64,000 nt of DNA from Azolla caroliniana (GCA_043228905.1 JBHGNT010000002.1:21080001-21144000), one strand, 5' to 3'; positions 22,323 through 47,722 are shown, counted from the first letter of the stretch. Made by a program: numbers and translations. The notes: generated by a model not told the origin, from the letters alone.

Positions 22323-25300
22323 TCAAGCATAAATGGCATAAGGATTTCCATTCATTCTCATTTCCATGTCAATGGGATGGCGAGGATTTGATTCTCTATT
22401 ACTTATGCATTGATTCACTGGGAACCATAAACATCTTAACAATATTATTCCAACATACGACACGGCTATGACAATGAATAGACCCCCGTAACTATGGAGA
22501 GACATTTTTACTGTGTCAGGAGAACTTGTAATGCAGACTCCGGAACCAAGCCACTTATCCTTGATCCTTTGAAGATCTCCGTTTTGTTGTAAAGATAGAA
22601 TAGAAAGTGACATATCATTAGTTAAGGGTGAGTTCTTTTGAAATGCCTGCAGGCGAGGGGGGAAATCCCTTAATAGACCACATCGATTGAAGAATATCCA
22701 TATGGAAGTGGCAAGTTTAAATGCGATCAAGAATACTTACAAATGCAAATCCGCCAAAGTAGCCAATGTTCGAGTCAACGATTGTGTATTTGCATCCTAG
22801 GTTGGTAAGGAAGGTTGCCAAGTAAGGTGACTCATCAATAATTGCCGACACATTACCTGACGTCAATGCATTGTCATAATCTTCTTGAGTAATCAAGTTC
22901 ATGAGTCGTTCTGATGAAATGTTGAGGTTATTCTTCAAGTAATTTACTTCGAATGAACCTTCTTGACATCCTATTTTTAGATGACTTTTTTGCAAGTCTG
23001 CGAAACTTCGAATGGTTGGACGTTGTTGTTGTTGTTGCGCTATTAATATAGATGACAAGCTTGCTATATAGCTCGATGAAAATATGAGTACAAAAACTAG
23101 CCAAACTAGTGTGAATGCTCGACCTGAGTGGGTTTTGGCGTCATCCCCTGCGAAGCATTCCCTTTGTTTAGTAAAATGTGTTGAACATTTTCAAGGACAA
23201 TATTAATATATGATATCTAAAAAATTTTGAACTTAGGTTTTCTTATATTCAACAGTATTTATCCACTCATCATGTATAATCTGAATGTGTACTTACTATG
23301 AGAGAAGAAGATGGCCATGGCTGTCAACCTGGCAAGATCAATAAATAATTGATGGAATACAAATTAGAAACGATGTATTCTATTAGAATTTAGAGAATAA
23401 AAACAAGACTATAGAGATGGGTTTTGAATAATGTGGATAATGTTTGGTTAAAAACCAAACCATGGAATGAACATTTAACTAGCAAAGAGAAAGAGAGAGT
23501 TGTAATGCGTAGGTAATGCCACTACCCTTACTAACATAGATTTGATGAGGTAATAGGTCATACCAAACCATTGGGAATGTACATAGAACAATATAATCAC
23601 ATCTATCACATTATTTACCATTCCACAATTCATATAGTTTCTTCTTCCTTTAATTAAGGCTTTCTAATTACCAACATTTTGGGAAGGACAAGTGAGACAA
23701 TATGTTATTTAGTTACCCAATTATATAATGAGTTCTAGGGGGTTCGTTAGGAATATGTCCCTCCTATGGGAGGAACCAATTGGTCGGGCCGAGAGCCGAC
23801 AATCGATGTCACAGAGAGCGGACAATTGTAGACAAGGACTAGCCGACTAGTCGGGCCGAGACGCAACAGTCAATGTCATAGAGAGTCAACAACAGACGAT
23901 CCCAGTCGAAGACAAGACCGACTAGTCGGACCGACCAGAGGGTCGACGACAAGGCCGATTAGTCGGGCCGACTAGACAATCGACACTGGAGTCGACTACT
24001 CGATCAGTCAGTTGATTAACTGCGATTATTGTTAGTATAATAATAGAAGTGAGAGTAGTACTAAGGAACTATATATGTAAATAACCCATAAGGTGTATAA
24101 GTATAAATACACTTAGGGCAAAACATCGTGTGATGCATTGTAGAATAGAAAGAATAGAATAGCGTAGAGTTCCTATAGATGTGTGTTACAGAGTGAAGAG
24201 TGAGTGTGTGATAGTGAGAGTAGTACTAAGGAACTATATTTGTAAATAACCCATAATGTGTGTAAGTATAAATACACTTAGGCAAAAACATAGTGTGATG
24301 CATTGTAGAATAGAAAGAATAGAATAGCGTAGAGTTCCTATAGATGCGTGTTACAGAGTGAAGAGTGAGTGCGTGATAGTGAGAGTAGCGCCATAGTTGT
24401 GTGAGCTTAGTAACTGTGTGTTACAGAGTGAAGAGTGAGAGTGGCGCCATAGTTGTGTGAGCTTGGACGCCAAGAACCCTACATGGCGGATACACACTGT
24501 GCAGAGAGAGTGTTGTATACTATCTCCTTTGTATTCTCCATTGTATAGTGGATCTTTGTTCCCGTGGTTTGCCCCGTTTACGGTTTCCACATTAAATTGT
24601 GTATTCAGTGCATTTGTTGTTTTACTATTTCCGCATTATTGTGCATTTCATAATCGGATTTCCTCACAAATCTCCATGATCGAAGACCAACAAACTGGTA
24701 TCAGAGCTTGAGGTGCAAGCATGGAAGCATGCGTGAGTGGCTTCCTAGGCATGATAGTTCTACACTTTTAGAACTTTGCAGATTGGAAGATAAAGATGGA
24801 AGGCCTTCTCTTAGTCAAAGACCTATACGAGCCCATCGATAGAGCATAAATACCCACGGGACTATTACAGTCTGAATGGAAAGTTCTGAACAGAAAGGCG
24901 GTGGCCACCATTAGATAGTGTGTTGATGTGAGTGTCCTTCAGCATGTGCCAAACGACACAAATGCGTACGAGATGTGCCAGAACTTGTCAGGTCTATATG
25001 AGTGGAAGAATGCCATCAATGAAACATCTTTGATGAGAAAGATTGTGAGGTTGAAGTATAGGGACGGGGAAAGCATAGTCGAGCATGTAAGCACATTCAT
25101 GGGGTATGTAATCCAGATTGTGGCAACTAAACTTTTCCTTAAGGATGCAATTCAGGCCATCCTGCCACTGTGTAGACTACCGGACAAGTGGGAGAACCTG
25201 GTGGTGACTCTCAACACCACGTTTGAAGAAGAGAACTTGTCTCTACAAATGGTACAGACAAGCATCTTTAGCGAGGAGACAAGAAGGAAGGACAAGGGTG

Positions 25301-28300
25301 TCCTATCCCAGTCGGAGTCAAATCTGACTCAACATACATGTAGGGGAAGAAATCGGCAAAGAAGTCCACAAAGAACGGAGAAGTCCTAAGCCAAATCCAA
25401 GTCTAGAGTCAAGCTAGCATGCTTCTATTGTGGAAAGCCTAGACACTTCGAGAGGGACTGACAACACATGATGAAGGACAAAGGTGTCCATAATAATGTC
25501 GAACCCAGGAAGATTCCTGATGAAAAGTGCACATTGGTCGTAGATACAAGTGTTAAGGAGATTTTGTTCATTTGTGAATAGGCAAGCACAAATCTTGCAA
25601 GTGAAGAGTGTACTTGGGTAATCGATTGGGGCAGATCTTTCCACATAAGTCCATCGAGAGAGTGTTTCTTAACTTGCATAGCCGGGGATCATGGCTATGT
25701 AAAGATGGGAGATAATGAGGAGTGCAAGATAGCGGACATAGGAAGTGTAAGCCTGATGACGTCGACAGATTATCGATTTAATATGAGGGAAGTTCGAGAT
25801 GTCCTCGATATCATATTGATTTGATATCGACTGGAAGGCTAGATGATGAAGGCTACAATGGTAGCTTTTGAAATGGCAAGTGGAAGTTCTATCGAGGAAA
25901 CCTCATAGTGGCCCGAGCACAGAAACAGGGCACATTGTATATGATGCATGTCCGACTGTGCAAGTAAAAAATGAACGTGGCAGCCAACTCGAGTGGAGAG
26001 TTAGGGCATAAGAGGCTAGACCATATGAGTTAGAAAGGAATGCATCTACTAGCTGAACAGGAACTTCTACCAGAAGTGAAAGGCGTACACTTGGAGAAGT
26101 GTGTCGGGTGCTTAGTCGGAAAGCAGAACAGAACAACATTCCACTCAAGACCACCGAAAAGAAGAGAAATGCTCTTGGAACTAGTGCACACCGATGTGTG
26201 CTATGTGGAGGCTCCATCACATCGAGGCGGACAGTACTTCGTCACGTTCATCGATGACTACTATAAAAAATTGTGGGCTTTAGTACTAATATCGAAGGAT
26301 CAAGTATTGTCGTTCTTCAAGGAGTTCCAAGCAACGACAGAAAGAGAGTCAAGTCAAAAGTTGAAGGTGGTCCCAACCGACAACGGTGGCGAATATAGAG
26401 GGCATTTCGAAGAATACTGCGAGGCCCAAGGTATTCGAATCGAATACATAGTGCGAAAGACCCCAGCATTGAACATGCTTGTAGAGAGGATGAATCAGAC
26501 GATAATGGAAAGAGTAAGGAGCATGATGTTGCATGCTATACTGGCGAAAATGTATTGGAATGAGACGATGTACACAACTATTTATTTGATCAATAGGTCT
26601 CCCTCAATACCATTGAAAGGTGATGTCCCACATTAGCCCAAAGTCTTTGCGGAGAAAGAGAAAGAGAACCTACTATGTCAACTAAAGAAAATCTTGTATG
26701 GTTCGAAACAAGCTCCATGGCAATGGTATAAGAAGTTCGAGTCCTTCATGTTGGAATATAGGTTCCAGAAAACACAAGTTGATTAGTATGTGTACGTAAA
26801 GAGGTATGATGAGGGTTACTTCCTAATTCTCTTATTATATGTGGATGACATCTTGATAGTCAGACAAGACACGAAGAGGATCGTGAGCTTAAAGAAAGCT
26901 CTAGGCAAGTCGTTTGCAATAAAAGAACTTGGACCCGCTAAACAGATTTTAGGGATGCACATAGTTTGGGACAGAACTAAGAAAGTGTTGTGGTTGTCAC
27001 AAGAGAAGTATGTGACAAAGATCCTAGAAAGATTCAACATGTCGGAAGCAAAGCTAGTCGGCTCTATGTCACCGACCAACTAAGCTAAATGTTAAGCAAT
27101 GCCTAAGGGGTGAAAAAGAAAAGGTTGAGATGAGGAAAGTACGATATGCCTTTAAAGCCGTCGGCAGTTTAATGTATGTTATGGTTTGTACGAGACCATA
27201 CATAGCATTTGCTATGGGGACAGTAAGCCGATATAGGAGTAATCTAGGAAGAGAACATTGGGCAACTATTAAATAGATACTCAGGTACTTGAAAGCCACC
27301 TTTGGGGTATGCCTAAGGTATGGTTGAAGGGTTTACCGACTCGGAAACATTGGGGGACACAAACTCAATTTCATCTACTTCAAGGTACATCATGACTTAT
27401 GCATGGGGAGTAATGTCGTGGCAATCACAACTTCAAAAATATGTGGCCTTGTTGACCATAGAGGCAGAGTATATGGCAGCGGTAGACGCTGGCAAAGAGC
27501 TGATCTGGATGAGAAATTTTCTCAGTGAGTTAGGAATGAAGCAAAGGGAATCCTTGCTTCACTGTGATAGCCACAACCCCATACATCTAGCCAAGAATGC
27601 TATGTACCACTCCTGAACCAAGCACATATAGAGAAGGTATCACTGGTTATGGGAGAGAGTGGAAGATGGAGAGTTTACTCTTGCGAAGATCCATACTGAC
27701 CAAAATGGATACGACATGCTCACAAAGAACCTATCGATGGACAAACTCAAAGTAAGTCGACAAAGGACAAGGATCTCTATTCCCGTGGTTTTCCCTGTTT
27801 AGGGTTTCCACGTAAAACTGTGTACTCTGTGCATTGCCTATTTTTTTGTTCCCGCATTATTGTGCATTTCATCATCGGATTTCCTCACGAATCTCAGTAA
27901 TCGAAGACCAACACGTTTGTAGTTGAAGATTTGGGCAAGAATACTCTTCTATTGTCATGTACTCAAGCAAAAGCTTTGTTGAACGGTAGATGCTCCTAAT
28001 GGGACAAGGATCTTCAAAGATGAGATGAGGCAAGGCGTAGTATGTTAGTTAGGTACTCAATTATATAATGCGCACTAGTGAGGGCATAGTCTATAGTCCT
28101 TCAACACCCAGGTGACTCTCCATCGAAGGTAACTAACTTGTAATTTTAGCTGCTTGATATATTTATTTTCCTAATATATTTATTGTTATGATGAACTCTA
28201 CACATGGTTCACGTCTCTAGATTTTTCTCTTCTTCAACGACACATTGTCTTCCGGCATTCCTCATGATATCTATCCCTTTCATGTATTTCAGTTTATGCT

Positions 28301-30528
28301 TGTAACTAATCTCCCAACCAACTATGGCTAGCAATCAATCGTAAGATTGGTGTCTAAATAGCTCCTAGAAAACAATCTAGAGCAATTGGGTAGCAGTTAC
28401 TATGAAACCCTAAACCCTATTAGGTGAGGGTTACTTGAGAAACCTAGACATCTATCTTCGGGTTTGGGTTAACTTCCTTTGGATATAGAGCGCGATATTA
28501 CACATGTACTCCCAGCCCGTACCTCCTTTAATTCCATGTTCCTAAACCCTAAACCGTAAACCCAAGACATCTGTCTTTGGGTTTGTCTTGACTTCTTTTT
28601 GCTATAAACACTACCTCGACAAACCCTCCACCTAAGAGAGTATTGCATCCCTTGTCAATGTCATAGTACCTGTTATTGAAAGTTGTTCCACACATTGTCA
28701 ATTGCCATCAATGCCATATTATGACTCCAATTTAACATATTTATTATCAATATATACAATTAAATATTCGCATTCATATGTGGTGTGCGTTTATATTACA
28801 CACTAATATGAGGTGTTGAAAAATGTGGTTTGATACAAACAATATGATATGAGGTGATCATGAGTTCTTACCAAAACGATTTTGAGAAGGCCTTTCTCCA
28901 ATCTCCATTATGTTCATGAGCTTGGCCACACCATTCCACGAAGAAGATCAAAGACATTGTGACAATAAATAATGCTCCAATGGTTATCCAAAGTTGCCAA
29001 GAGAAAGGGGAAATGAATGTCCAGAATGAAATATTACTCCTAGGTTGAAGTGGCGCAATCATTTGAAGACTCGATTCTATATATGGCTGGGTAAAGTCTA
29101 CTAACTTTAACCGGTCACTAGTGATCGTCAAATCAGCAACTACTCCATCTACGTCCTATGACCATGCATGCATACAGTGAAAACCAATACAAACGTATTC
29201 CTGGAGCACATAATTAATTAAAACCTTATTAATCCAACTTGTTGTATGCTACGTAAATATCATTATCAAGCAGTGGAAATAATGAGTCGAATTATTCATG
29301 AGCTACATACCTTGGAGATTTACTCACACCGTTTACATCAAAGTTGCCAAGGTATGTCATGGTGCTACGATATTCATCACACTTATTATAGTGCATACAT
29401 TTTTGGCTCTTACTCCATACACTTGTACTTGATTGCACATGTATTTCTTTGAGTAAAAATTTCAATCTTTGGTATTAAATTTGCTCAAACTATTCCTTGG
29501 ACCATTCTACACAAGGATTACTAACAAAGTTACTTTATCTCTTCGAAGTGAGCACATCGTACTCTCTTGAGAGTAGCTTTTCCATACAATACAACAAAAC
29601 CAATTATTCACCGAATAAGCCTCTCATATTTGACTTATTTGGCGCTAAGAAATATAGATCTTGCACAATTAATCAAATAGATCTTACAAGAATAACTAGA
29701 AAACATTACCTTGGCCAACCGATGCTTGAATAGTATATCATGGAATGTCAAAATAATTTTAGCGATGCTAAAAATTACTTTTAAAACACTCATATGTATT
29801 GGAGTTCAAACTCTTGTCCACTGGATCAAACCCTCAATTATAGATGGAATTATCAACAATTTGTTAGTGCCTATGTCAATCTTTGAACGAGATTCCATGG
29901 TAAGGGGTATGATATTAGGACAATCTTAGTAATTTGTTACATATAATCTCGAGGTATTTTATGGACTTAGATATTAGTTTCTCCCTGTCTAGCCATGACA
30001 TCCTACTTGAGGATTGCCACAATCCCTTATGTCTTTTCTATCATTAATGTGCACGTAGAAATTCTTGCTAACATAAATATAAACACATTATCGAGGTCCA
30101 TTTATCATAAATGATTAACCTTAAGCGATTGATTTTTACGAAAATTAAGTGTCATTACTACAACAAAAACAAAAAAAAATTAGGTATAGCTAATGTAATA
30201 CCTTAGAGACAAGCTTTTGCACAAGGTCATTATAGGTTGGGTCTACAAGGCCATCTCCATAGCCAATTAATGTGTAATTAATACGATAATTAAGCTTCTC
30301 AACGCATTCTTGAAACACATTGATGGCGAAGCCGGAGAAATTGACGACGGAGTTGGGCGTGACCGGTATCTCAGACGATTGCCAACTCACAAACTCTTCG
30401 AATCCAAGTTTGAGAGGAACAAGGATCTTCAAGTTGGAGGAATTGGTCGCGTGCGCAGTCGGAAATTCAGGGGAGAAGAAGATGGCAAGCACTAGGAGAG
30501 CCGTGATGAGGCGCATCGGAGCATACAT
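22323..30528 (-). CDS. GLR: Glutamate receptor-like channel, copy 1, lacking the amino-terminal domain (~457 aa). Exons 30528-30202, 29155-28872, 23328-23297, 23147-22741, 22646-22323
   Basis: The spliced frame is open (327+284+32+407+324 = 1374 nt) with GT-AG introns at GLR-typical positions, including the 32-nt pore-loop exon. Segments in order: signal peptide MYAPMRLITALLVLAIFF..AHA; S1 LKILVP..GFEEFV..GFAINVF..YNDLVQ/DGVVADLTITSDR..VDFTQPY; M1 FSWQLWITIGALF; pore W-LTAMAIFFSH; M3 VWLVFVLIFSSSYIASLSSIL; S2 GCQEGSF..IIDESPY..GGFAFAFQKNSPL..KWL; M4 YGGLFIVIAV. Confidence 0.93.
23745..27913 (+). mobile_element. Copia element in GLR copy 1 intron 2 (5' LTR 23745-24692, PBS 24696-24707, internally deleted, PPT and most of the 3' LTR deleted)
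   Basis: PBS TGGTATCAGAGC; gag, zinc knuckle, IN (LELVHTDVC..FVTFIDD..TDNGGEY), RT (LLYVDDILI), RH (EAEYMA). Confidence 0.92.
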
Positions 30529-30594
30529 GGTCGGGGGATGAGAATGAAGGCCCCAACGGGTGGCCAAGTGTGAACTGAGGGGGTGGAAGGGACG

Positions 30595-30683
30595 AGGGAG
30601 AGAGAGAGAGAGAGAGAGGGGTTTATATATGTAATAATGTATGTATACATACACATATACATAATATATATCATGTATATGTA

Positions 30684-30722
<39 letters not shown>

Positions 30723-30725
30723 CAG
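30595..30725 (-). promoter_or_regulatory. Core promoter of GLR copy 1: TATA box (TATATAAA, 30629-30622), (CT)n pyrimidine tract and upstream (TACATA)n microsatellite
   Basis: The TATA box is ~94 nt upstream of the ATG at 30528 and is followed by a CT repeat, a typical plant core-promoter/5'UTR layout. Confidence 0.65.
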
Positions 30726-33700
30726 AATGAGCAAGTCATGGTCTATTGCTCAGAGAGGATCATCTGGAGAGAATCATGCATTTTGGTCAATCCTTCGCTG
30801 TAAGGATGGATTGATGTGTCGCTGCTAGAACCAGGAGATTCTGATTGAGCTCTCCTCGTTCGTAAGGTCATCTAAAGGGGAGACCCACAGATCGTGCACT
30901 GCTCAATCGCCATTCAACTCATTGAAAAATTTAATCTGCACAGACTCATTATATTCAAACCTCTTTTTCAGGAAATTATGTAGAGAGGAATTCTTTTGAA
31001 CATCATCTGTGCGCACTACCCTCTGTATATGTGTTGACCTTGAGGAGATTCCTACCCAGCATATTCTTCGTATTTTTTTGTTCTTTTTGGGGGGGTATTG
31101 TATCGTCTCCCATGATCCATCCTTTTTCCATAACTTCAATAACAACATAACATACAATATGCAATTTTATTTGTCTAATCTACGAAATCTAAATAACATA
31201 ATTTGGATTAGGTTTTTTTTCCACATTTTTTATGGTTTTTTTTTTCATCATCTATCGTTTTGACCATATTTGCATTACTCTACTTAATATATATGGAAAA
31301 TGAAGTATAAATCAAGCAAAATGTAATTTGCAATATAATGAGATAAATGTCAAAGGCCTACTCTACTTAATCTATCATTCATAAAGTAATGGAAAGCAAC
31401 ATTATCCGTAATATAGTTTAGGGGAGTACAACCCCTTTTATTTATAGTTCTTCATTTCCTTTTCTTGAAGTGTTCCTATTACTCCTCCGTTAGTAGTTAC
31501 CATTAAAATTTGAGCTACATATAGAACTAGATGGTGAGGAATGTCAAATGGAAATAAAATGACAAGTCGCAATGATGAAGAGCTTATGCCAATGTTTATA
31601 TGTATATAAATTAATGCATTTATATTTCTATGATTGTATGCAAATGATTGTAAAAAATGTGCGTGTGTGATTGTTATATGCATGTGTAAATGAATGAATG
31701 TATGCATTTGTATAAATTAATGATTGTATGTTTATATATGTACAAAGTACAATTGTAAGTATGTTTATGATTTTATGCATGTATTAAATGTTTCTATATG
31801 GCAAATGACTTCTCAAATTTGGCCTTTACATATTCTTTGTTCCCATATAACTTCATTGCTTCATAAAGTTACAAAGTATAGTGAAGCTTGGGGATGAAGT
31901 TTTGGAGAGGACATTCATGCCATCATCTAGACAACCTTCAACCTTCTTATTTCCATTACCGGGTATAGTAGTGCTCCAACTCAAAGCTTCTAAGGTGCAT
32001 ATTGTTGCACAATGCCAATGGTCCTCTCATATTTTCCAATGTAGTGTAGGCTAGGCTTGAAGCCTTGGAGATTTATGTCATGGCATTGTCCAAACTATTC
32101 CAAGGGATCTCGTTTTCACACATGTTCTTATCTTTAGCCTTATCATTGGGCACTTCACGATCAAATGATGCGAAGTGTTCTACACCACACTTACACCCTT
32201 GTTATAATCTTCATGTCCCAATGCATGGACCATTGTATTGACCACCTTCTTTCCTTTTATATTATCATCAAGCATTCTAATTCACGAGAAAAATATATCC
32301 AATATCTCAAAGGTACTTGGGACTTCATTGTTAAATTGTAATGTGCGTGTGTATGGTAATGGACACATGCACATTATACAGGTTATTTATGATTTCATAT
32401 ATATGTACACATTACCACAATCATATACAAACATCCATATAATAATTTATTCATTAACACATTCATGCACGTACATTTATACACTCGTACACATAGATAC
32501 CTTACGTTTAACAATTCAATTATAAACTAGCATACATATATTCAAACTAACATTTATACACAAGATTCTCATTCATACATGCACATTCAGTCATACACAT
32601 ACATACTAAAATTGTTTATGTACGTGTTTTAGGTATTATGGAGCTTATGTTGGAGAAATTACCATCAACCATCCCAACACTTATATTCTCCATATAGTTG
32701 CACGATGGTATCGGGGTATACAGATGAGGATATAACATCACACTTGGCTCTCTTACAAATGCTCGAGTATGATGACCTCCGTAAGTGCTTCTCTGATGCC
32801 ATTGCAAACACAAACTAGGAGGACAACTCAAGTACAACCACCAGCACCAGAACCATCACCAAAACCAAGAACACGTATAGGCACCGTCAAGGGCACTTCC
32901 TACATTGTTATCATGTTGCAAATAATGCAATAAGGTTTGATTGAAAGATCCAACTAGACTGACTTGACAAGATGGAGGGTCTTGAAAGGTTTGTATGTCA
33001 AGAAACATTAGCCATATTTTAGTCCATAGTTTCTTGATTATCTTGCTTTATTTTGTTAGGACATACTAGAGGTGTACCAAAGGTCGTAACCAGTTTGACT
33101 TCTAGCATGGGCTGAAACCTACAACTGGTGGGTTTACAAATACATCATCAACTTCCACACGATCACGCGTGACTCTAAGAATTGATTGTAATCTTGACAA
33201 GAGCCTTGATGGGATTTCTCTAGGAGTTAGGGTTTTGTTTAAAAGAGTTAGATGACCTTGTGGAGTCATACCTCCCTCAAATAGAGAGACCCATTGAAAG
33301 AGTTCATAAAGGTTTTCACATGCTCTCAATGTCATAACATGATCCTATAATAAACACGTTCGCGTTCAGAAGTGGAAGGATAGTGCATTCCATTTTTAGA
33401 TTCTTTTTATAATTTTGCAAATTTATGCAATATATAGAAACTTGTTACATTAGTATCACATGTTCGTCAACCCATATAGAATTTGCTAAATTATTAATAG
33501 TTAACAAGTTTTAAAGTAAAAAACATGTATTCTTTGAATATTTATAAAGTTGATGATCTCTGAATACAAAATTTAATTAAAATTAAGAATATGACAATTG
33601 TTTATTCAATTGAAATGCTATATTATGTAATATGCAAAGTTGGTTGAAATATTGAGAAAATCATGAGCTCCAGACATAAAATGTAATTAAATTACAGGTT

Positions 33701-33976
33701 ACGCACATGGTGTATACAACATTTGATAGCTATAGTTAGTGATTATGCATTATGCACTCTAATACTTAGTGAATGCGGCCCGATATAATACCTTACTCTA
33801 ATGTTAGTAAGAAAGAAGAAAATCAAACATATGGACACTATGGACATAAAGTCCATGTGAAATATCATCTAGAGTTTTCCCAATACACACACATGAATGA
33901 GGACATCCATACACATGTATCATATAGTGGATACACTTGGAGACTCATTATGGTCACACCCAAAAGTATGGCTTAC

Positions 33977-34630
33977 CAAACAAGGTTCTCTACACCATGA
34001 CAACGAGATCTCAACGCTTGAGCCATAGAATATCTTTGGTCCATGCTATGAAAGACCACTATTCTCCACAAGCTCGTTTTGGTCAACTTTTGCGAAATCC
34101 TTCACCATTTTCTCCAATTGTTTGAACCTAAATGGTTAATCATCATAAGAAGATCCGACCATATATTAATCGTATGGAATATCCACAATGAGTAACGTGT
34201 AATGCTTGTTTGGCAACTTCTGGATCATCTTCGGCACATCACCATAGTACACATTATAATACAATTCTTGGGTGATATCATTTTTGTGGCTAAACTTCTT
34301 GAAAGTTCCGTAATCGTCCACATCGAATGCCTTCATTAAGCACCGATTGTTTTGTTTCTGTGCTCTTTCAAGATGGGCAAGAAAGGAAGCTGGAAAATCA
34401 TGTTTGTCTTTGACTTCTCCAGGCTTCTTGCTATGACATGGTTTCTATGTGAAACAACAAAAGAAGTAACTCATACATTGTTCACATATGTAATAAACTA
34501 GAATGGCAAATTTCAAATATGTAATACTAACCCAATCCTTAAAAGCAATAAAATTTTCCGATAACTCCTTGTATGAAGATGTAATCGAATACTCTTCAGT
34601 CACTTGTTCTCATGTTAAGCAACCAAGTGT
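33977..34630 (-). pseudogene. Beta-class N6A/N4C DNA methyltransferase-like, N-terminal catalytic half (2 exon remnants), copy in unit A
   Basis: VYYGDVPKMIQKLPNKHYTLLIVDIPY (motif IV at 34183-34172) ..FKQLEKMVKDFAK..LWRIVVFHS..NLVW|GTAAG. Intron 34531-34445 (GT..AG). Contains stops and a frameshift. Confidence 0.7.
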
Positions 34631-34739
34631 TGCCGGTTAGGAACATGGCCTACCCTCAGTCCTTCGGGGTACGTATCAAGGTGATCGTGGTACAGGGTAG
34701 GAAATTGCATAGCGTGTGGAACGTACTGAGTTAGAGCAT

Positions 34740-35002: not shown

Positions 35003-35172
35003 TCTTTGGTGAACCCGACGTGAAACAAGGCGGTAGGAGTGGGAGTGGGAGAATACCTTGTCAAGTCTATAAAACTTTTTGCATGAATGTCACTGTAAGA
35101 TTAGGGTCATTATGGATATTAGGATAAGTTAGGAAGACTTGAGGCTTTATTGTTTGACGTATTACCTACTAA

Positions 35173-35577: not shown

Positions 35578-35589
35578 AAATACAACAAT

Positions 35590-36650
35590 TGCCGGGGAAG
35601 ACCAGCCCGTAATCACCCTTCATTCTCCAAGTCGTTGTCCGCGTTGGTGTTGTCGTCACCATCGTCTAGGCTTGCCAGGTCCAGTTCGTCCTCGTGTCGC
35701 TTCTTAAATACTTTGATCCTCTTCCCTGCTACTGGCACATCTATCCGCATCCTCTCAAGCTCCACGAGATGGTACATGCCATTGTCGTTAGCGCTCGTCA
35801 CGACGTAGGGCCCGAACCACCTCTTCGCAAATTTTCGCACTGTTTTGTGCTGATTGTTGAGGTTGTTGTCATATACCAGCAGCCAATCGCCTTCTTCAAT
35901 CTCCTTCGGCCGGAGCCGGTGTGTCCGATCGAACCGGGCCTTGTTCCTTCCCCGTGTTGTGCGCAACTTCTCCCTTGCTCGCTCTACGTCCTCTGGTCTC
36001 CGTTCAAGCTGTCGAATCAACGCCGCCAATAGCTCTTCCCGGCTCATTTCGTTCCTCCAATCCACCGCGGCCCACGAAGTGATTGCCCGCTCCACCAACA
36101 TAATCGGTTTATGCCCGTACATCAACTCCGCCGGCATGAACCCAGTCACCAAACTGTGCGCCAGTCTGCCCACAATGCATAAGGTAGAAGCCGCGGCCAA
36201 TTCCCAACCTGTCCTTCACACGCTCGCACCAACGCCTTCACGATTGGGCCTTGCCCTCGTTCCACCTTCCCGTTCGCCTCTGGGTTGTATGCCGTAGTGA
36301 GGGAGAGCTTGACCCCGAACCGGTTGAACAACTCTTCGACTTCCTGCGCGTCCAGCTCCCCCCAATCTGCCACAATCTTTCCTACGCACCCGTACCAGCA
36401 CACCACCTCCTTAATCAGGAATCGGCATACCGCCAAAGTCGTCTTATTCTGCAGTGCGCGGACCTCCACTTGGTTCTTCAAGTCTTCTCGGGCCAGTACC
36501 AAGTACCGCATCTGTCCTACCCCCATCGACATCGTCACCAAATCTACCATCCACTTGAAATGGACGGTTGGCGGGTAGGTCGGGTGTAGCTCGTCTCGAT
36601 GCCAGATCATGGAGTGCATCTGGCAACTTTCGCACGTCGTCACGAACCAG
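35590..36650 (-). mobile_element. Gypsy integrase fragment (same family as 58120-59116)
   Basis: CESCQ..KWMVDLV..LAREDLKNQVE..TTAYNPEANGKVERG..KRWFGPY. Confidence 0.85.
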
Positions 36651-37446
36651 TGCATTTGTACAAGGCATTCATCTTCAATATCCTTCGGCAACCTTCGACA
36701 TATTAAACATATTGGGTCACCGATAGAAGGCATTCATCTCTTTTTGAACATAGTCCGGGTGATCGAATGGTTAGTGTGGTTGAACATCTTTTTGTGGGGT
36801 ACTACGATGCAATTACGAAGAAGAAGGCTTGGGCACATGTGAATGAAAGAAATATGTACATCTTGTGCCCAGCGGTAACAAAGAAGTTATGCCATGTATC
36901 TAGCGATAAGAGCCTGTTGGTGAACCCCTACCAAAAACCACAAAGATTAATCAACCGCCTCATCGACCTATTTGAATTTTAGATTTGTTTTCTGGCACAT
37001 GTATATAATATAAAACTTGTCACATCAATTTAGATTAACGTATAGTCTATTCTTTAGTTTGTTTGAACATGTGTAGTTTCATACTACTATTAGGTACTAC
37101 CACAATATGCACATTAAAGATGTTCAAGAACTCTGTTCCATTAGAGAAGGACCCTGAGCAGGTTAACATCATCAAAATGAGGATCCAAGGTATCTAGGAT
37201 TGTCCTTATCAAGACCAAGAAGTTGGGGCAAAGCAGATCAATGAAATAGATATGTTCCAGATGACTTCTAGAGAACCAATGGAACCTATAGATGAAAAAG
37301 CAAGGGATCTTGTGAACTTAGAAGGTGTGTCAAAGCCCTAACATACTAAAGATTCTATTGAGCTTATTGATGAAGCCAATGAGGACAATCCTGATCAAAT
37401 AGCTAATCTTGAAGAGCCTCCCTTACCGGAGTTACTATTGGATTGA
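36651..37446 (+). pseudogene. Beta-class N6A/N4C DNA methyltransferase-like C-terminal half (2 exons, intron 37001-37093)
   Basis: RMVSVVEHLFVGYY..VNPYQKPQRLINRLIDLF (motif X), then ILDLFSGT/xTTTICTLKMFKNSVPLEKDPEQVNIIKMRI (motifs I-II, SAM binding), then an acidic tail. Contains stops and frameshifts. Confidence 0.8.
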
Positions 37447-38121: not shown

Positions 38122-39069
38122 GCTAGGTTTATTGCAACTAAAATCACGATAATTGCTTGTAAATTGGCTTACCAATTTGTTGATGAGTTGTTTCATTTTT
38201 AAGGGTTACCAATAGATATTGTGAATGATCACGATTGAAAGTGTAGTAGTGACTTTTGGACGAAAATCCTTAAGAAGTTAGAAAGAACCTTGAGCATGAG
38301 ATCCACATATCATCTTCAATCAGATGCATAGAAGAAATGCATGAATAAAAATTTTAATGACATGCTTGGAGCATACATTCTTGCAAAGCGAACAAAATGG
38401 GAATGTTATCTCCCAACTTTTGTGTTTGCTTATAATAGCTCCAAGCATATATCAACGGGATCTAGTCCTTTTATATTTATGTATGTATTTGAGCCACATG
38501 CCCCTCTTGATACAAAACTTTCCAAGGGATATCCAAGATAATATTGCATATTTCTGGACATAATGTATAAAAACCTCAAGATACAATACGTTTTTATGCC
38601 AACTAGAATAGGCAACCCTGTGTATTCAGCCTTGGACATAATGTACTTCTATGTGTGCCTCAAGATTCAAAGACATTGTCTATGGGTCTATGCTAGTGTA
38701 ATCACCCAGTCTTTCTTGTAAGTCATTTAAAAGAACTTAATAATTTTGGCAATAATCTACTTAAAATCAAAATTTCCATTATGACCTTTAGTGTTATATT
38801 TATTACAAACATATGTGACGAGGACAATTTTGATCTCACCAAGCTTAGATTACAAATGTTGTTATAACTCTGTTATTGCTTATTCCACTTTGTACACTAG
38901 CAAATTTGCTTTAAACTTTGATCTTCCCCAACTTAGATTACAAATGATGTTATTACTCTCTGTTGTTAATTATTCCACTTTGTACAATACCTTATAATAT
39001 TCACCCCCTACAATTGTTTTTGCAACCTTGTCCCCTTCAACAATTAGTGATTTTGTGAGTATATTTGAT

Positions 39070-42000
39070 TCAAGCATAAATGGCATAAGGATTTGCATTC
39101 ATTCTCATTTCCATGTCAATGGGATGGTGAGGATCTGGTTTTCTATTCCTTCTGCATTGATTCACTTGGAACGATAAACATCTTAACAATATTATTCCAA
39201 CATACGACGCGACTATGACAATGAATAGACCCCCGTAACTATGGAGAGACATTTTTACTGTGTCAGGAGAATTTGTAATGCAGACTCCAGAACCGAGCCA
39301 CTTATCCTTGATCCTTTGAAGATCTCCGTTTTGTTGTAAAGATAGAATAGAAAGTGACATATCATTAGTTAAGGATGAGTTCTTTTGAAATGCCTGCAGG
39401 CGAGGGGGGAAATCCCTTAATAGACCACATCGATTGAAGAATATCCATATGGAAGTGGCAAGTTTAAATGCGATCAAGAATACTTACAAATGCAAATCCG
39501 CCAAAGTAGCCAATGTTCGAGTCAACGATCGTGTATTTGCATCCTAGGTTGGTAAGGAAGGTTGCCAAGTAAGGTGACTCATCAATAATTGCCGACACAT
39601 TACCTGACGTCAATGCATTGTCATAATCTTCTTGCGTAATCAAGTTCATGAGTCGTTCTGATGAAATGAAGAGGTTATTCTTCAAGTAATTTACTTCGAA
39701 TGAACCTTCTTGACATCCTATTTTTAGATGACTTTTTTGCAAGTCTGCGAAACTTCGAATGGTTGGACGTTGTTGTTGTTGTTGCGCTATTAATATAGAT
39801 GACAAGCTTGCTATATAGCTCGATGTAAATATGAGTACAAAAACTAGCCAAACTAGTGTGAATGCTCGACCTGAGTGGGTTTTGGCGTCATCCCCTGCGA
39901 AGCATTCCCTTTGTTTAGTAAAATGTGTCGAACATTTTCAAGGACAATATTAATATATGATATCTAAAAAATTTTGAACTTAGGTTTTCTTATATTCAAC
40001 AATATTTATCCACTCATCATGTATAATCTGAATGTGTACTTACTATGAGAGAAGAAGATGGCCATGGCTGTCAACCTGGCAAGATCAATAAATAATTGAT
40101 GGAATACAAATTAGAAACGATGTATTCTATTAGAATTTAGATAATAAAAACAAGACTATAGAGATGGGTTTTGAATAATGAGGATAATGTTTGGTTAAAA
40201 ACCAAACCATGGAATGAACATTTAACTAGCAAAGAGAAAGAGAGAGTTGTAATGCGTAGGTAATGCCACTACCCTTACTAACATAGATTTGATGAGGTAA
40301 TAGGTCATACCAAACCATTGGGAATGTTCATAGAACAATATAATCACATCTGTCACATTATTTACCATTCCACAAATCATATAGTTTCTGCTTCCTTTCA
40401 TTAAGACTTTCCAATTACCAACATTTTGGGAAGGACAAGTGAGACAATATGTTATTTAGGTACACAATTATATAATGAGTTCTAGGGGGGTTGTTAGGAA
40501 TATGTCCCTCCTATGGGAGGAACCAACTGGTCAGGCCGAGAGCCGACAATCGATGTCACAGAGAGCGGACAATTGAAGACAAGGACTTGCCAACTGGTCG
40601 GGCCGAGAGGCAACAATCGATGTCATAGAGAGTCAACAACAGACGATCCAAGTCGAAGACAAGACCGACTAGTCAGACCGACCGGAGGGTCGACGACAAG
40701 GCCGATTAGTCGGGCCAACTAGACAATCGACACTAGAGTCGACTACTCGATCAGTCAGTTGATTAACTGCGATTATTGTTAGTATAATAATAGAAGTGAG
40801 AGTAGTACTAAGGAACTATATTTGTAAATAACCCATAGGTGTATAAGTATAAATACACTTAGGGCAAAACATCGTGCGATGCATTGTAGAAAACAAAGAA
40901 TAGAATAGCTTAGAGTTCCTATAGATGTGTGTTACAGAGTGAAGAGTGAGTGTGATAGTGAGAGTAGTACTAAGGAACTATATTTGTAAATAACCCATAA
41001 TGTGTATAAGTATAAATACACTTAGAGAAAAACATAGTGTGATGCATTGTAGAATAGAAAGAATAGAATAGCGTAGAGTTCCTATAGATGTGTGTTACAG
41101 AGTTAAGAGTGCGTGCGTGATAGTGAGAGTAGCACCATAGTTGTGTGAGCTTAGTAACTGTGTGTTACAGAGTGAAGAGTGAGAGTGGCGCCATAGTTGT
41201 GTGAGCTTAGATGCCAAGAACCCTACATGGCGGATACACTCTATGTAGAGAGAGTGTTGTATACTATCTCCTTTGTATTCTCCATTGTATAGTGGATCTT
41301 TGTTCCCGTGGTTTGCCCCGTTTAGGGTTTCCACATTAAATTGTGTATTCTGTGCATTTGTTGTTTTTCTATTTCCGCATTATTGTGCATTTCACAATCA
41401 GATTTCCTCATAAATCTCCATGATCGAAGACCAACAAACTGGTATCAGAGCTGGAGGTGCAAGCATGGAAGCATGCGTGAGTGGCTTCCTAGGCATGATA
41501 GTTCTACACTTTTAGAACTTTGCAGATTGGAGGATAAAGATGGAAGTCCTTATCATAATCAAAGACCTATACGAGCCCATCGACAGAGCATAAATACCCC
41601 CGGGACTATTAGAGTTTGAATGGAAAGTTCTGAACAGAAAGGCGGTGGCCACCATCAGATAGTGTGTCGATGTGAGTTTCCTTCAACATGTGGTGAATGT
41701 CACAAATGCCTATGAGATGTGCCAGACCTTGTCAGGTCTATATGAGAGGAAGAATGTCATCAATGAAACATCTTTGATGAGAAAGATTGTGAGGTTGAAG
41801 TATAGGGAAAGGGAAAGCACAGTCGAGCATGTAAGCACATTCATGTGGTATGTAAACCAAATTGCAGCAACTAAGTTTCCCCTTGAGGATACAATGCAGG
41901 CCATTCTGTCATTGTGTAGACTACCGGACAGGTGGGAGAACCTGGTGGTTACTCTCAACACCTCATTTCAAGAAGAGAACTTGTCGCTACAAACGGTAAA

Positions 42001-45000
42001 GATAAGCCTCTTTAACAAGGAGACAAGAAGGAAGGACAAGGGTTTCAAATCTGACTCAACATACATGTAGAGGAAGAAATCGGCAAAGAAGTCCACAAAG
42101 AAGGGACAAGTCCTAAGCCAGATCCAAGTCCAAAAGCAAGCTAACATGCTTCTATTGTGGATAGCCTAGACACTTCCAAAAGGACTGTGAACACATGAGG
42201 AAGGACAAAGGTGTCCGTAATAATGTCGAACCCAGGAAGATTCCTGATGAAAAGGGCACATTGGCCGTAGATACAAGTGTTAAGGAGATCTTCTTCATTT
42301 GTGAACAGGCAAGCACAAATCTTGCAAGTGAAGAGTGTACGTGGGTAATCGACTCAGGTGGATCTTTCCACATAACTCCTACGAGAGTGTGTTTCTCGAC
42401 TTACATAGCTAGGAATCATGGCTATCTAAAGATGGGAGATAATGGGGAGTGCAAGATAGTGGACATAGGAAGTGTAAGCCTAATGATGTCGATAGATTAT
42501 CGATTTAATCTGAGGGAAGTTCTAGATGTCCCCGATATCAGATTGATTTGATATCGACTGGAAGGCTAGACGATGAAGGCTACAATGGTAGCTTTTGAAA
42601 CGGCAAGTGGAAGTTCTATCGAGGAAACCTCATAGTGGCCCGAGCACAAAAAGAGGGCACATTGTATATGATGCATGCCCGACTGTACAAGTCGAAAGTG
42701 AACTTGGTAGCCAACTCGAGTGGAGAGTTATGGCATAAGAGGCTAGACCATATGAGTTAGAAGGGAATGCATCTACTAGCTGACCAGGAACTTCTCCCGG
42801 AAGTGAAAGGAGTACACTTGGAGAAGTGTGTCGGCTGCTTAGTCGGAAAGTAGAATAGAGCAGCATTCTACTCAAGACCACCAAGAAGAGAAGTGCTCTT
42901 GGAACTAGTGCACACCAACGTGTGCTATGTAGAGGCTCCATCACATCGAGGCGGACAGTACTTCGTCACGTTCATCGATGACTACAGTCGAAAATTGTGG
43001 ACTTTAGTACTAAAATTGAAGGATCAAGTATTGTCGTTCTTCAAGGAGTACCAAGCAAGGGCAAAAAGAGAGTCAAGTCAGAAGTTGAAGGTGGTCCGAA
43101 CCGACAACAGTGGCGAATATAGAGGGCATTTCAAAGAATACTGCAAGGACCAAAGTATTCGAATCGAATACACAGTGCCAAAGAACCCAGCAATAAACAA
43201 GCTTACAAAGAGGATGAATCAGATGATAATGGAAAGAGTAAGGAGCATGATGTTGCATGCTATGCTGGCGAAAATGTACTGGACTGAGGCGATGTACACA
43301 ACTGTTTATTTGATCAATAGGTCTCCCTCAATACCATTGAAAGGTGATGTCCCACATTAGCCCAAAGTCTTTGCGAAGAAAGAGAAAGAGAACCTACTAT
43401 GTCAACTAAAGAAAATCTTGTATGGTTCAAAACAAGCTCCATGCCAATGTTATAAGAAGTTCGAGTCCTTCATGTTGGAATATAGGTTCCAGAAAACACA
43501 AGTTGATCACTATGTGTATGTAAAGAGGTATGATGAAGGTTACTTCTTAATTCTCTTATTATATGTGGATGACATCTTGAGAGTCGGACAAGACATGAAG
43601 AGGATCTTGAGCTAAAAGAAAGCTCTAGGCAAGTTGTTTGCAATAAAAGATCTTGGACCCGCTAAACAGATTTTAGGGATGCACATAGTTTGGGACAGAA
43701 CTAAGAAAGTGTTGTGGTTGTCACAAGAGAAGTATGTGACAAAGATCCTAGAAAGATTCAACATCTCGGAAGCAAAGCTAGTCGGCTCTATGTTACCGGC
43801 CAACTAAGTTGAATGTTAAGCAATGCCTAAGGGGTGAGAAAGAAAAGGTTGAGATGAGGAAAGTACGATATGCCTTAGCCGTCGGCAGTTTAATGTATGC
43901 TATGGTTTGTACGAGACCATACATAGCATTTGCTATGGGGACAATAAGCCGATATAGGAGTAATCTTGGAAGAGAACATTGGGCAACTGTTAAATAAATA
44001 CTCAAGTACTTGAAAGGCACCTTTGGGGTATGCCTAAGGTATGGTTGAAGGGTTTACCGACTTGGAAACATTGGGGGACACAAACTCAAGTTCATCCACT
44101 TCAGGGTACATGATGACTTATGCATGGGGAGTAATGTCATGGCAGTCACAACTTCAAAAAATATGTGGCCTTGTTGACCATAGAGGCAGAGTATATGGCA
44201 GCGGTAGAGGCCGGAAAAGAGCTGATCTGGATGAGAAATTTTCTCAGTGAGTTAGGAATGAAGCAAAGGGAGTCCTTGCTTCACTGTGATAGCCACAACC
44301 CCATACATCTAGCCAAGAACGCTATGTACCACTCCTGAACCAAGCACATATAGAGAAGGTATCACTGGTTACAGGAGAGAGTGGAAGATGGAGAGTTTAC
44401 TCTTGTGAAGATCCATACTGACTAAAATGGATCCGACATGCTCACGAAGAACCTATCGATGGACAAACTCAAAGTAAGTCGACAAAGGACAGGGCTAACT
44501 AACTCCACCCATAGGAGTGAAGGGGGAGTTTGTTAGGGATATGTCCCTCCTATGGGAGGAGCCGATAGTCGAAGACAAGGAGTAGCTGACTGGTCGGGCC
44601 GGGAGACAACAGTCGATGTCAAGGAGAGTCGACAACAGAGGATCCAAGTCGAAAACTAGACCGACTAGTCGAGCCGACCGGACTGTCAACGACAAGGCCG
44701 ATTAGTCGGGCGAACTGGACAGTCGACACTAGAGTCGACTAGTTGAATTGACTATTCAATCAATCGGTTGATTATTTTCTATTATTATTAGTATAATAAT
44801 AGAAGTAAGAGTAGTAGGAACAGAGTGAAGAGTGAGAGTGAGAGTGACGCCAAGACTCTGTGCAGAGAGAGTGTTTTATATTGTCTCCTTTGTATTCTCC
44901 ATTGTATAGTGGATCTCTATTCCCGTGGTTTTCCCTGTTTAGGACTTCCACGTAAAACTGTGTACTCTGTGCATTTCCTATTTTTTTGTTCCCGCATTAT

Positions 45001-47656
45001 TGTGCATTTCATAATCGGATTTCCTCACGAATCTCAGTAATCGAAGACCAACACGTTTGTAGTTGAAGATTTGGGCAAGCATACTATTCTATTGTCATTT
45101 ACTCAAGCAAAAGCTTTGTTGAACGGTAGATGCTCCTAACGGGACAAGGATCTTCAAAGATGAGATGAGGCAAGGCGTAGTATGTTAGTTAGGTACTCAA
45201 TTATATAATGCACACTAGTGAGGGCATAGTCTATAGTCCTTCAACACCCAAGTAACTCTCCGTCGAAGGTAACTAACTTGTAATTTTAGCTGCTTGATAT
45301 ATTTATTTTCCTAATATATTTATTGTTATGATGAACTCTACCCATGGTTCACGTCTCTAGATTTTTCTCTTCTTCAACAACACATTGTCTTCCTACATTC
45401 CTCATGATATCTATCCCCTTCATGTCTTTCAGTTTATGCTTGTAACTAATCTCCCAACCAACTATGGCTAGCAATCAATCGTAAGATTGTTGTCTAAATA
45501 GCTCCTGGAAAACAATCTAGAGCAATTGGGTAGCAGTTACTATGAAACCCTAAACCCTATTAGGTGAGGGTTACTTGAGAAACCTAGACATCTATCTTTG
45601 GGTTTGGGTTAACTTCATTTTGATATAAAGCGCGATATTACACATGTACTCCCAGCCCGGACCTCGTCCAATTCCATGTTCCTAAACCGTAAACCCTAGA
45701 CATCTATCTTCAAGTTTGGGTTGTCTTCTTTTTGCTATAAACACTACCTCGACAAACCCTCCACCTAAGAGAGTCTTGTATCCCTTGTCAATATCATAGT
45801 ACCTGCTATTGAAAGTTGTTCCGCACCTTGTCAATTGCCATCAATGCCATATTATGACTCGAATTTAACATATTTATTATCAATATATACAATTAAATAT
45901 TCGCATTCATATGTTGTGTGCGTTTAAATTACACACTAATATGAGGTGTTGAAAAATCTAGTTTGATACAAACAATATGATATGAGGTGATCATGAGTTC
46001 TTACCAAAACGATTTTGAGAAGGCCTTTCCCCAACCTCCATCGTGTTCATCAGCTCGGCCACACCATTCCACGAAGAAGATCAAAGACATTGTGACAATA
46101 AATAATGCTCCAATGGTTATCCAAAGTTGCCAAGAGAAAGGGGAAATGAATGTCCAGAATGAAATATTACTCCTAGATTGAAGTGGCGCGATCATTTGAA
46201 GACTTGATCCTATATATGGCTGGGTAAAGTCTACTAACTGTAACCGGTCACTAGTGATCGTCAAATCAGCAACTACTCCATCTACGTCCTATGACCATGC
46301 ATGCATATAGTGAAAACCAATACGAACGTATTACTGGAGCACAGAATTAATTAAAACCTTATTAATCCAACTTGTTGTATGCTATGTAAATATCATTATC
46401 AAGCAGTGGAAATTCAAAGCACCGTGTGCTTGGCATTCAAAGATAACGCAATATCTTCATCAAATAGGCTTCCGTATGTCAAAATCGGACAACTCCCTCT
46501 CCATACGAAGCGATTCTACTGCATACATTTTTGGCTCTTACTCCATACACTTGTACTTGATTGCACATGTATTTCTTTGAGTAAAAATTTCAATCTTTGG
46601 TATTAAATTTGCTCAAACTATTCCTTGGACCATTCTACACAAGGATTACTAACAAAGTTACTTTATCTCTTCGAAGTGAGCACATCGTACTCTCTTGAGA
46701 GTAGCTTTTCCATACAATACAACAAAACCAATTATTCACCGAATAAGCCTCTCATATTTGACTTATTTGGCGCTAAGAAATATAGATCTTGCACAATTAA
46801 TCAAATAGATCTTACAAGAATAACTAGAAAACATTACCTTGGCCAACCGATGCTTGAATAGTATATCATGGAATGTCAAAATAATTTTAGCGATGCTAAA
46901 AATTACTTTTAAAACACTCATATGTATTGGAGTTCAAACTCTTGTCCACTGGATCAAACCCTCAATTATAGATGGAATTATCAACAATTTGTTAGTGCCT
47001 ATGTCAATCTTTGAACGAGATTCCATGGTAAGGGGTATGATATTAGGACAATCTTAGTAATTTGTTACATATAATCTCGAGGTATTTTATGGACTTAGAT
47101 ATTAGTTTCTCCCTGTCTAGCCATGACATCCTACTTGAGGATTGCCACAATCCCTTATGTCTTTTCTATCATTAATGTGCACGTAGAAATTCTTGCTAAC
47201 ATAGATATAAACACATTATCGAGGTCCATTTATCATAAATGATTAACCTTAAGCGATTGATTTTTACGAAAATTAAGTGTCATTACTACAACAAAAACAA
47301 AAAAAAATTAGGTATAGCTAATGTAATACCTTAGAGACAAGCTTCTGCACAAGGTCATTATAGGTTGGGTCTACAAGGCCATCTCCATAGCCAATTAATG
47401 TGTAATTAATACGATAATTAAGCTTCTCAACGCATTCTTGAAACACATTGATGGCGAAGCCGGAGAAATTGACGACGGAGTTGGGCGTGACCGGTATCTC
47501 AGACGATTGCCAACTCACAAACTCCTCGAATCCAAGTTTGAGAGGAACAAGGATCTTCAAGTTGGAGGAATTGGTCGCGTGCGCAGTCGGAAATTCAGGG
47601 GAGAAGAAGATGGCAAGCACTAGGAGAGCCGTGATGAGGCCCATTGGAGCATACAT
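39070..47656 (-). CDS. GLR: Glutamate receptor-like channel, copy 2, lacking the amino-terminal domain (~457 aa). Exons 47656-47330, 46288-46005, 40075-40044, 39894-39488, 39393-39070
   Basis: Same exon sizes, splice sites and motifs as copy 1. The frame is open and M3 reads IFTSSYIASLSSIL. Confidence 0.93.
40492..45053 (+). mobile_element. Copia element in GLR copy 2 intron 2 (5' LTR 40492-41436, PBS 41440-41451, PPT, 3' LTR 44531-45053)
   Basis: Same insertion as 23745-27913 in the paralogous intron. PPT GAAGGGGGAG precedes TGTTAGG. Confidence 0.92.
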
Positions 47657-47722
47657 GGTCGGGGGATGAGAATGACGGCCCCAACGGGTGGCCAAGTGTG
47701 AACTGAGGGGGTGGAAGGGACG

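Follow-up and report, generated by a model that had tools for sequence, protein, structure and literature searches.

A stretch of 64,000 nt from the Azolla caroliniana genome (GCA_043228905.1, JBHGNT010000002.1:21080001-21144000), referred to here as the window and numbered from its first nucleotide, carries two tandem minus-strand genes for glutamate receptor-like (GLR) channel subunits, gene A at 22323-30528 and gene B at 39070-47656. It is very likely that both are intact members of an old and conserved fern family of GLRs, the products of which never carry the amino-terminal domain (ATD). An earlier note, made from the sequence alone, had proposed that in these genes a signal peptide is fused straight to the ligand-binding domain (LBD). 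In a 2023 review, plant GLRs are described as consisting of an ATD, an LBD and a transmembrane domain (TMD), and absence of the ATD is mentioned for bacterial GluR0 only (PMC11479355).

Gene structure and encoded proteins

Each gene consists of five exons of 327, 284, 32, 407 and 324 nt, and the model is identical in copies A and B. The coding sequence of 1374 nt has an intact frame in both copies and encodes 457 aa, which agrees with the ~457 aa given in the earlier note. All introns are GT-AG, and the eight splice sites are canonical. The exons are listed below, with S1 and S2 denoting the two parts of the LBD and M1 to M4 the channel segments.

Gene A exon 1: 30202-30528, minus strand; 327 nt, containing the ATG, the signal-peptide-like N-terminus and the first half of S1, as judged by the open reading frame (ORF) and its translation
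Gene A exon 2: 28872-29155, minus strand; 284 nt, remaining S1 with the Arg of DLTITSDR, M1 and the M1-M2 loop, terminating in ..SFW
Gene A exon 3: 23297-23328, minus strand; 32-nt mini-exon for the pore helix LTAMAIFFSH, flanked by CAG and GTAAGT
Gene A exon 4: 22741-23147, minus strand; 407 nt, pore loop RDDAKTHSGR, M3 with the SYIASLSS gate motif and most of S2 (GSF, DESPY)
Gene A exon 5: 22323-22646, minus strand; 324 nt including the stop codon, end of S2, M4 and short cytoplasmic tail
Gene B exon 1: 47330-47656, minus strand; frame and splice sites as in gene A, 4 base differences and 1 amino-acid change relative to A
Gene B exon 2: 46005-46288, minus strand; 11 bases differ from gene A exon 2
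Gene B exon 3: 40044-40075, minus strand; pore-helix mini-exon identical to that of gene A
Gene B exon 4: 39488-39894, minus strand; splice model common with gene A
Gene B exon 5: 39070-39393, minus strand; includes the stop codon

Splicing was assessed using run X1, which was guessed to be RNA, consists of contigs and contains 52% of the sampled words of exons 4-5. The X1 contigs were aligned to positions 28800-34000 (5,201 letters). Two of them join 29154 to 30201, skipping 1046 nt that correspond exactly to intron 1, and thereby use the exon-1 donor AAG/GTATTA; the skip ends in CT..AC on the plus strand, equivalent to GT..AG on the minus strand. The same two contigs continue from exon 2 into the mini-exon, as their loose end TGACAGCCATGG matches 23315-23326 and 40062-40073 exactly, and it was from these twelve letters, which differ from those that follow exon 2 in a four-exon model, that the 32-nt mini-exon was recognised. 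X1 contigs carry the letters of gene B at three listed exon-2 positions, and one contig has 11 differences from gene A in exon 2, equal to the number for gene B. A further contig is collinear with the genome over 30302-30584; it extends across the ATG into the leader, past a CAG at 30575 that could be an acceptor. No ATD or other upstream exon is joined to exon 1 in the contigs over the aligned region. What the contigs show is spliced transcripts lacking an upstream exon, and not a start site.

Two other models of the pore region were considered and rejected. A four-exon, 451-aa model joined ..SFW to ECFAGDD.., leaving the pore helix six residues short, and is contradicted by the sequence that follows exon 2 in the X1 contigs. 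Its exon-4 acceptor is not conserved in related contigs that carry paralogues of the genes. The acceptor TTCGCAG/, which lies 14 nt downstream of it, is kept in these contigs and is the sole one in frame with the mini-exon. A 36-nt mini-exon, formed with the weak donor GTACAC and the acceptor of the four-exon model, was likewise discarded, as that acceptor is not kept in paralogue contigs L007 and L008. The combination of GTAAGT with TTCGCAG/ was preferred because it is in frame, abolishes an indel in the comparison with fern homologues and is retained by both L007 and L008.

A pattern search located TATATAAA 94-101 nt upstream of the ATGs of both genes (at 30528 and 47656), and a CT tract follows it, as had been claimed for a TATA box and CT tract ~94 nt upstream. 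Paralogue contigs with a synonymous divergence of ~0.4 from gene A retain the leader block TTCACACTTGGCCACCC and the CT-rich tract. The corresponding features are:

Gene A core promoter and leader: 30575-30629, minus strand; TATATAAA at 30622-30629, then the CT-rich tract
Gene B TATA box: 47746-47753, minus strand; from the pattern search

A (TATACA)n-type microsatellite is situated directly upstream of each TATA box (30631-30731 and 47755-47850), and the CT tract downstream of the box differs between copies A and B by two CT units.

The exon-1 ORF reads MYAPMRLITALLVLAIFFSPEFPTAHA followed by TNSSNLKILVPLKLGFEEFVSW... The first 27 residues are signal-peptide-like, in that a short charged stretch (MYAPMR) precedes a hydrophobic run of twelve residues (LITALLVLAIFF) and a polar segment, SPEFPTAHA, which ends in Ala-His-Ala before TNSS; as judged from the sequence and a hydropathy scan, the signal peptide is predicted only. 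S1 begins ~30 residues past the Met. Exons 1, 2, 4 and 5 align to residues 488-561, 572-655, 673-804 and 803-869 of AtGLR3.4 (PDB 7LZH), respectively. The exons are thus collinear with AtGLR3.4 from 488 to 869, and therefore the protein starts where S1 of a canonical subunit starts. A predicted signal peptide running straight into S1, as proposed, is borne out by the ORF, this alignment and the hydropathy, and the features described in the earlier note were all located at the positions given there.

The exon alignments to AtGLR3.4 further reveal the layout of the ionotropic glutamate receptor (iGluR) superfamily, in which a bipartite LBD (S1 and S2) is interrupted by channel segments. Matches to the Pfam families SBP_bac_3, Lig_chan-Glu_bd and Lig_chan were weak and below cut-off because each exon was scanned alone. 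Three more hydrophobic segments in exons 2, 4 and 5 fit M1, M3 and M4, and all six NxS/T sequons fall in parts predicted to face outward, which fits an outward LBD. The gate reads SYIASLSSIL (SYTANLAAF-type), and the pore region FWLTAMAIFFSHRDDAKTHSGRAFTLVWL matches fern homologues in length once the mini-exon is included. DLTITSDR, GSF and DESPY are present in both copies, and DLTITSDR and DESPY also in other members of the family, so that the ligand-binding Arg, the GSF and DE motifs and M1 to M4, which the earlier note had listed as kept, were all recovered. Asp, Thr and Arg of DLTITSDR, GSF, and Glu and Tyr of DESPY correspond to the residues that hold an alpha-amino acid in the LBDs of plant GLRs such as AtGLR3.3.

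Absence of the amino-terminal domain

When 32 full-length ATD-bearing GLRs were searched against the 64-kb window by tblastn, matches were obtained solely to the four larger exons of each gene. ATD-only queries gave nothing better than E 0.15 in the window, and these matches were scattered on both strands. The same ATD queries matched a canonical Selaginella GLR locus with E down to 1e-130, and the search was therefore sensitive enough. By tblastn, both the 7.5-kb interval separating the genes and the 16 kb on the upstream side of gene B are free of ATD sequence. An orthologue-type gene of Adiantum likewise has no convincing ATD within 10 kb upstream, the one weak match (E 0.003) being on the opposite strand, and PF01094 (ANF_receptor) was found in none of the fern clade members described below. 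With no ATD in the window and no ATD exon spliced on in the X1 contigs, the claim that the genes are ATD-less is upheld, and the conclusion that they natively lack the ATD and have the signal peptide and the start of S1 in one first exon is supported.

It is extremely unlikely that the two genes are ordinary full-length GLRs, the ATD exons of which would be unrecognised or located beyond the window, farther upstream, and would be joined to the ORF ahead of the ATG. The frame is open for 42 codons upstream of the ATG, to 30654, and the pyrimidine tract with the CAG at 30575 is acceptor-like, as such a structure would have it. However, the X1 contig that reaches 30584 crosses this CAG unspliced, the intergenic, upstream and Adiantum sequences searched lack a convincing ATD, and the ORFs of fern transcripts begin with a signal peptide directly before S1. 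Moreover, the ATD and early S1 share an exon in canonical genes, so that an ATD exon farther upstream would require an intron at a position that has none.

The intron positions also bear on how the ATD was lost from what are very probably natively ATD-less genes. Mapping of the ATD-less protein P0157 of Adiantum capillus-veneris onto its locus gave the same five exons as in the window genes, including the 10-residue pore mini-exon. The canonical Selaginella protein P0253 is encoded by six exons, among them a homologue of the pore mini-exon, and the last four introns are at the same four places as in the window genes, namely after ..VANK, after ..FW, after ..FFSQR and inside GF/AF. The four introns of the window genes thus match both a canonical and an ATD-less gene, and the positions are ancestral, as the earlier note had it. 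In P0253, a single exon encodes residues 87-541, and with them the first half of S1 and the greater part of the ATD, and so the ATD was not lost by exon skipping. Loss by truncation or internal deletion of the ancestral large exon is what these exon boundaries point to. An ancestral canonical GLR would have lost its ATD by truncation or deletion inside this exon, the truncated exon would have acquired its own promoter, leader and signal peptide, and the remaining four introns would have stayed put. A new promoter and a deletion fusing the old signal peptide to S1 fit the data equally well.

In the resulting 457-residue subunit, a cleavable signal peptide would lead directly into S1 and M1; the pore helix with its loop would be re-entrant, and M3, S2 and M4 would precede a short tail on the cytoplasmic side. 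Such subunits would enter the secretory pathway and assemble via their LBD and membrane layers into tetramers, and these may be amino-acid-gated cation channels that operate without ATD-based regulation, alone or with canonical GLRs.

Fern clade, selection and family turnover

A HMMER scan with the exon-4 ORF stretch (157 aa, 23190-22720, including 16 intron-encoded flanking residues) returned 729 proteins. Among these are proteins of 438-480 aa from Pteridium aquilinum (a transcript ORF), Adiantum nelumboides, Adiantum capillus-veneris and Ceratopteris richardii, in which the match is placed as in an ATD-less subunit. A second search, from the Pteridium protein, identified further members, including a subgroup of 576-658 aa and proteins on short Logan contigs of approximately mRNA length. 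All members of the clade have a hydrophobic N-terminus followed within 10-50 residues by the S1 start L(R/K)xLVP(L/W)K. In the databases, the fern proteins are labelled 'hypothetical protein' or 'Ionotropic glutamate receptor C-terminal domain-containing protein'. The 576-658-aa subgroup has a long, Pro/Ser-rich and poorly conserved insert in the cytoplasmic M1-M2 loop (alignment columns 270-420), which is absent from the window genes and from canonical GLRs.

Gene A was represented in the trees by its four larger exons, each as a fragment row of its own and not as part of a joined protein. In the maximum-likelihood tree, the four fragments and 12 fern ATD-less proteins (438-658 aa) form one clade (ultrafast bootstrap, UFBoot, 96; SH-aLRT 99), and all 30 ATD-bearing GLRs, from lycophytes, ferns, gymnosperms and flowering plants, are outside it. 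With FastTree and 154 GLR units, the support for the clade was 98, and two more ATD-less proteins were the only gain. Clade-specific signatures are VAD(L/I)TI for VGDITI, (K/R)TH(S/T)GR in the pore loop and FGGF(G/A)F for GWGF.

An AlphaFold2 model was examined for the Pteridium homologue P0018, not for a window protein. It has a mean pLDDT of 83.4, with the LBD above 95, and contains no extra domain beyond the LBD-TMD. The model matches the LBD-TMD of AtGLR3.4 (7LZI) with E 5e-29 and the LBD of AtGLR3.3 with a TM-score, by target, of 0.93-0.94.

Selection was assessed using 13 paralogue or orthologue contigs from metagenome assemblies containing host DNA, in which short ORF fragments had been found by a word-based single-exon protein search with a restricted length window. 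The ratios of non-synonymous to synonymous divergence (dN/dS, NG86) relative to these contigs are 0.12-0.55, with 0.12-0.33 for exon 1 alone and 0.13-0.62 for exon 4. A total of 20 distinct exon-1 homologues, 44-95% identical, was found in the related contigs. All have a common layout, in which the Met, a hydrophobic stretch and LKILVPLK.GF.EFV.W are in one exon that ends at the same donor; the signal peptides diverge and S1 is conserved. Given the monophyletic fern clade, the 20 exon-1 homologues and the dN/dS values, the amplifying subfamily proposed in the earlier note is borne out, and a real, selected and expanding ATD-less GLR subfamily is supported.

The comparison of the two window genes is less favourable. 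The coding sequences of A and B differ by 35 changes, of which 10 are synonymous and 25 non-synonymous (dS 0.034, dN 0.024, dN/dS 0.70), the count being the same under the five-exon model, and about 27 of the 35 would be non-synonymous under neutrality, as estimated from site counts. Most of the changes are in the M1-M2 loop and the C-terminal tail. Mismatches amount to ~5.5% in intron 2, ~0.8% in introns 3 and 4 and 2.5% in the exons, and this unevenness prevents proof of constraint. The A/B duplication is too young for a dN/dS test. In the earlier note, a ratio of about 1 across the LBD and transmembrane core of unexpressed loci had been named as a refutation; the family-wide values speak for selection, and that of the A-B pair, which is not distinguishable from 1, does not.

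A reading of the genes as 5'-truncated relics would attribute them to partial tandem duplication of only the LBD-channel half of a canonical GLR, the products being decaying pseudogenes in which an ORF start arose by chance. In flowering plants, loss of the ATD goes with tandem GLR duplication (PMC4995503). The A-B ratio not significantly below 1, the position of the genes among retrotransposons, one of which is inside an intron, and defects in some of the related contigs would be in line with such relics. Contig L003 (721-1128) has an in-frame stop in exon 4, and L007 (1-1726) passes from the end of exon 1 to exon 4 after 500 nt, without exon 2 and the mini-exon. Against this, both 1374-nt frames are intact and all splice sites canonical, proteins of Adiantum, Pteridium and Ceratopteris that group in a single, well-supported clade have the same architecture and exon structure, and dN/dS relative to the paralogues is low with exon 1 included. 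In addition, X1 contigs are spliced, and promoter-proximal sequence is conserved among paralogues. For the family, decay is largely refuted by these data, and it is very unlikely to account for the genes in the window.

Several points nevertheless weigh against two intact genes of a conserved, functional family. Besides the A-B ratio, the defective contigs indicate that the family also sheds pseudogenes; it both gains and loses members. X1 is a set of contigs guessed to be RNA, which show splicing and neither transcription start nor expression level, and X1 contigs other than the one with 11 differences differ by a few percent, so that alleles or very close paralogues are possible sources. The pore loop RDDAKTHSGR departs from RENTVSSLGR of canonical GLRs, and permeation may differ. 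Channel activity, ligand binding and assembly are predicted from conserved motifs only.

As the earlier note had suggested, the family may also be thought of as supplying accessory or 'tuning' subunits, which would depend on heteromer formation with ATD-bearing GLRs or act as ligand-binding modulators, in the way that tuning ionotropic receptors (IRs) of insects work with IR8a/IR25a. Multiplication of the family, with its 20 exon-1 variants and the tandem pair in the window, would be in keeping with this role, as would the clade-specific pore loop and the retention of canonical ATD-bearing GLRs in ferns, for example Ceratopteris P0180 and P0034. Adjacent or near-adjacent locus tags of Adiantum ATD-less GLRs (GOP47_0016660/0016661 and GOP47_0012736/0012738) suggest tandem pairs there too, and tandem arrangement of the ATD-less subfamily may be general in ferns. 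On the other hand, the core binding residues (D..T....R in S1, E..Y in S2) are kept and not diversified in the sequences seen. Furthermore, functional homomers are formed by bacterial GluR0 and by animal iGluRs from which the ATD has been deleted. A purely accessory role is unlikely on present evidence. A broader proposal is equally doubtful, namely that ferns possess a second, deeply separate class of GLR subunit that originated in one early ATD loss, is organised in tandem arrays and, by co-assembling with canonical GLRs or replacing them in particular tissues, would provide an IR-like modular sensing of amino acids absent from seed-plant models.

Genomic surroundings and relation to known systems

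Self-BLAST placed the two genes in a tandem duplication of ~14 kb, with one minus-strand gene per unit. The duplication units and the elements within intron 2, which measures 5.5-5.9 kb in both genes, are as follows.

Tandem duplication unit 1: 21401-35039; self-BLAST, partner 38148-52224
Tandem duplication unit 2: 38148-52224; self-BLAST, partner 21401-35039
Decayed Ty1/copia-type element in intron 2 of gene A: 24928-27755, plus strand; ORFs with an integrase core domain
Copia counterpart in intron 2 of gene B: ~41672-44338, plus strand; self-BLAST

The identity of the units is 94.4-95.4% over 21401-29280, the 3' two thirds, and 97.4-98.9% over 29385-35039, the 5' third with upstream DNA. It is thus uneven, at 94-95% in the 3' part of the gene and 97-99% in exon 1, intron 1 and the 4.5 kb upstream, a pattern that suggests either that the promoter-proximal part later underwent gene conversion or that the history had two steps.

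The copia element is present in both copies and was therefore inserted before the duplication. It lies antisense within intron 2, and splicing must therefore bridge the 5.5-5.9 kb between the exon-2 donor and the 32-nt mini-exon. Retrotransposon sequence makes up the remainder of the window, with Ty3/gypsy at ~17-20 kb and at 54-59 kb and with copia elements within introns. Two Ty3/gypsy-type bodies encoding protease, reverse transcriptase, RNase H and integrase flank the GLR pair, at 17056-19707 (minus strand) and 54670-58737 (plus strand), and internal repeats at 53103-54052/55287-56237 and 54050-55105/56639-57694 suggest a rearranged or nested element. Between the two duplication units, direct repeats of ~400 bp, 90% identical (35174-35576 and 36651-37047), flank integrase-like ORFs at 35613-36733 (minus strand). 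The ends of the window (1-2241 and 61740-64000) are 98.6% identical direct repeats ~61.7 kb apart, and the GLR pair may be within a larger segmental duplication, with more copies beyond the window.

An ATD-less fern GLR clade was not described in the open-access papers and preprints searched, a scope that leaves room for a description elsewhere. According to Chen et al. (2016), 11% of plant GLR gene models are without an ATD, in a sample that did not include ferns. Three quarters of these models belong to GLR1&2 of flowering plants, and they were read as domain loss during tandem expansion (PMC4995503). A conserved, transcribed and selected ATD-less clade would constitute a natural experiment on the role of the ATD in assembly, trafficking and gating in plants, and compact subunits of ~450 residues suit structural and electrophysiological work. 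Outside seed plants, GLR diversification took a different route, and the intron map shared with canonical genes reveals how the domain was probably lost, by truncation within an ancestral exon rather than by exon skipping. Being conserved, transcribed and compact, the family is of moderate interest to plant ion-channel biology.

Canonical clade-3-type GLRs (AtGLR3.4, 7LZH/7LZI; AtGLR3.3 LBD, 6R85) resemble the window genes in the S1-M1-pore-M3-S2-M4 order, the ligand-binding Arg, the GSF and DExPY motifs, the SYTASL-type gate and the four common intron positions, and the model of a clade member matches their LBD-TMD structure. In contrast to them, the window genes lack the ATD (~45% of a canonical subunit), have the signal peptide directly before S1, carry the clade-specific signatures and belong to a separate deep clade in the tree. 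The ATD-lacking models of flowering plants, such as an Impatiens 'GLR2.8-like' protein of 498 aa and a Quillaja protein of 510 aa, are similar in that they are often tandem and that some have a signal peptide before S1. However, they represent sporadic losses, mostly in GLR1&2 (PMC4995503), whereas in the ferns an entire conserved clade, which has an exon 1 of its own, is present in several genera and is under purifying selection, is defined by the loss.

Like the window genes, bacterial GluR0 is without an ATD and has its LBD interrupted by the channel. Unlike them, it is devoid of M4, and its filter is of the K+-channel type (PMC11479355). The window genes include M4 and a plant-GLR pore helix, have no GYG-type filter and branch among the sampled streptophyte GLRs. 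Insect tuning IRs are also ATD-less subunits of the iGluR family multiplied by tandem duplication, but the likeness is one of analogy only, the ATD loss of the window genes being independent and in the plant GLR lineage. In domain content and size, the window genes match engineered ATD-deleted animal iGluRs, for example LBD-TMD constructs of GluD1 and GluD2 (422-479 residues; 9nwq, 9jrg, 9jrj), which are laboratory-made, while the fern architecture is natural and inherited. The genes do not represent a new kind of system: scattered ATD-less models of flowering plants were known before, and what appears to be new is the conserved fern clade.

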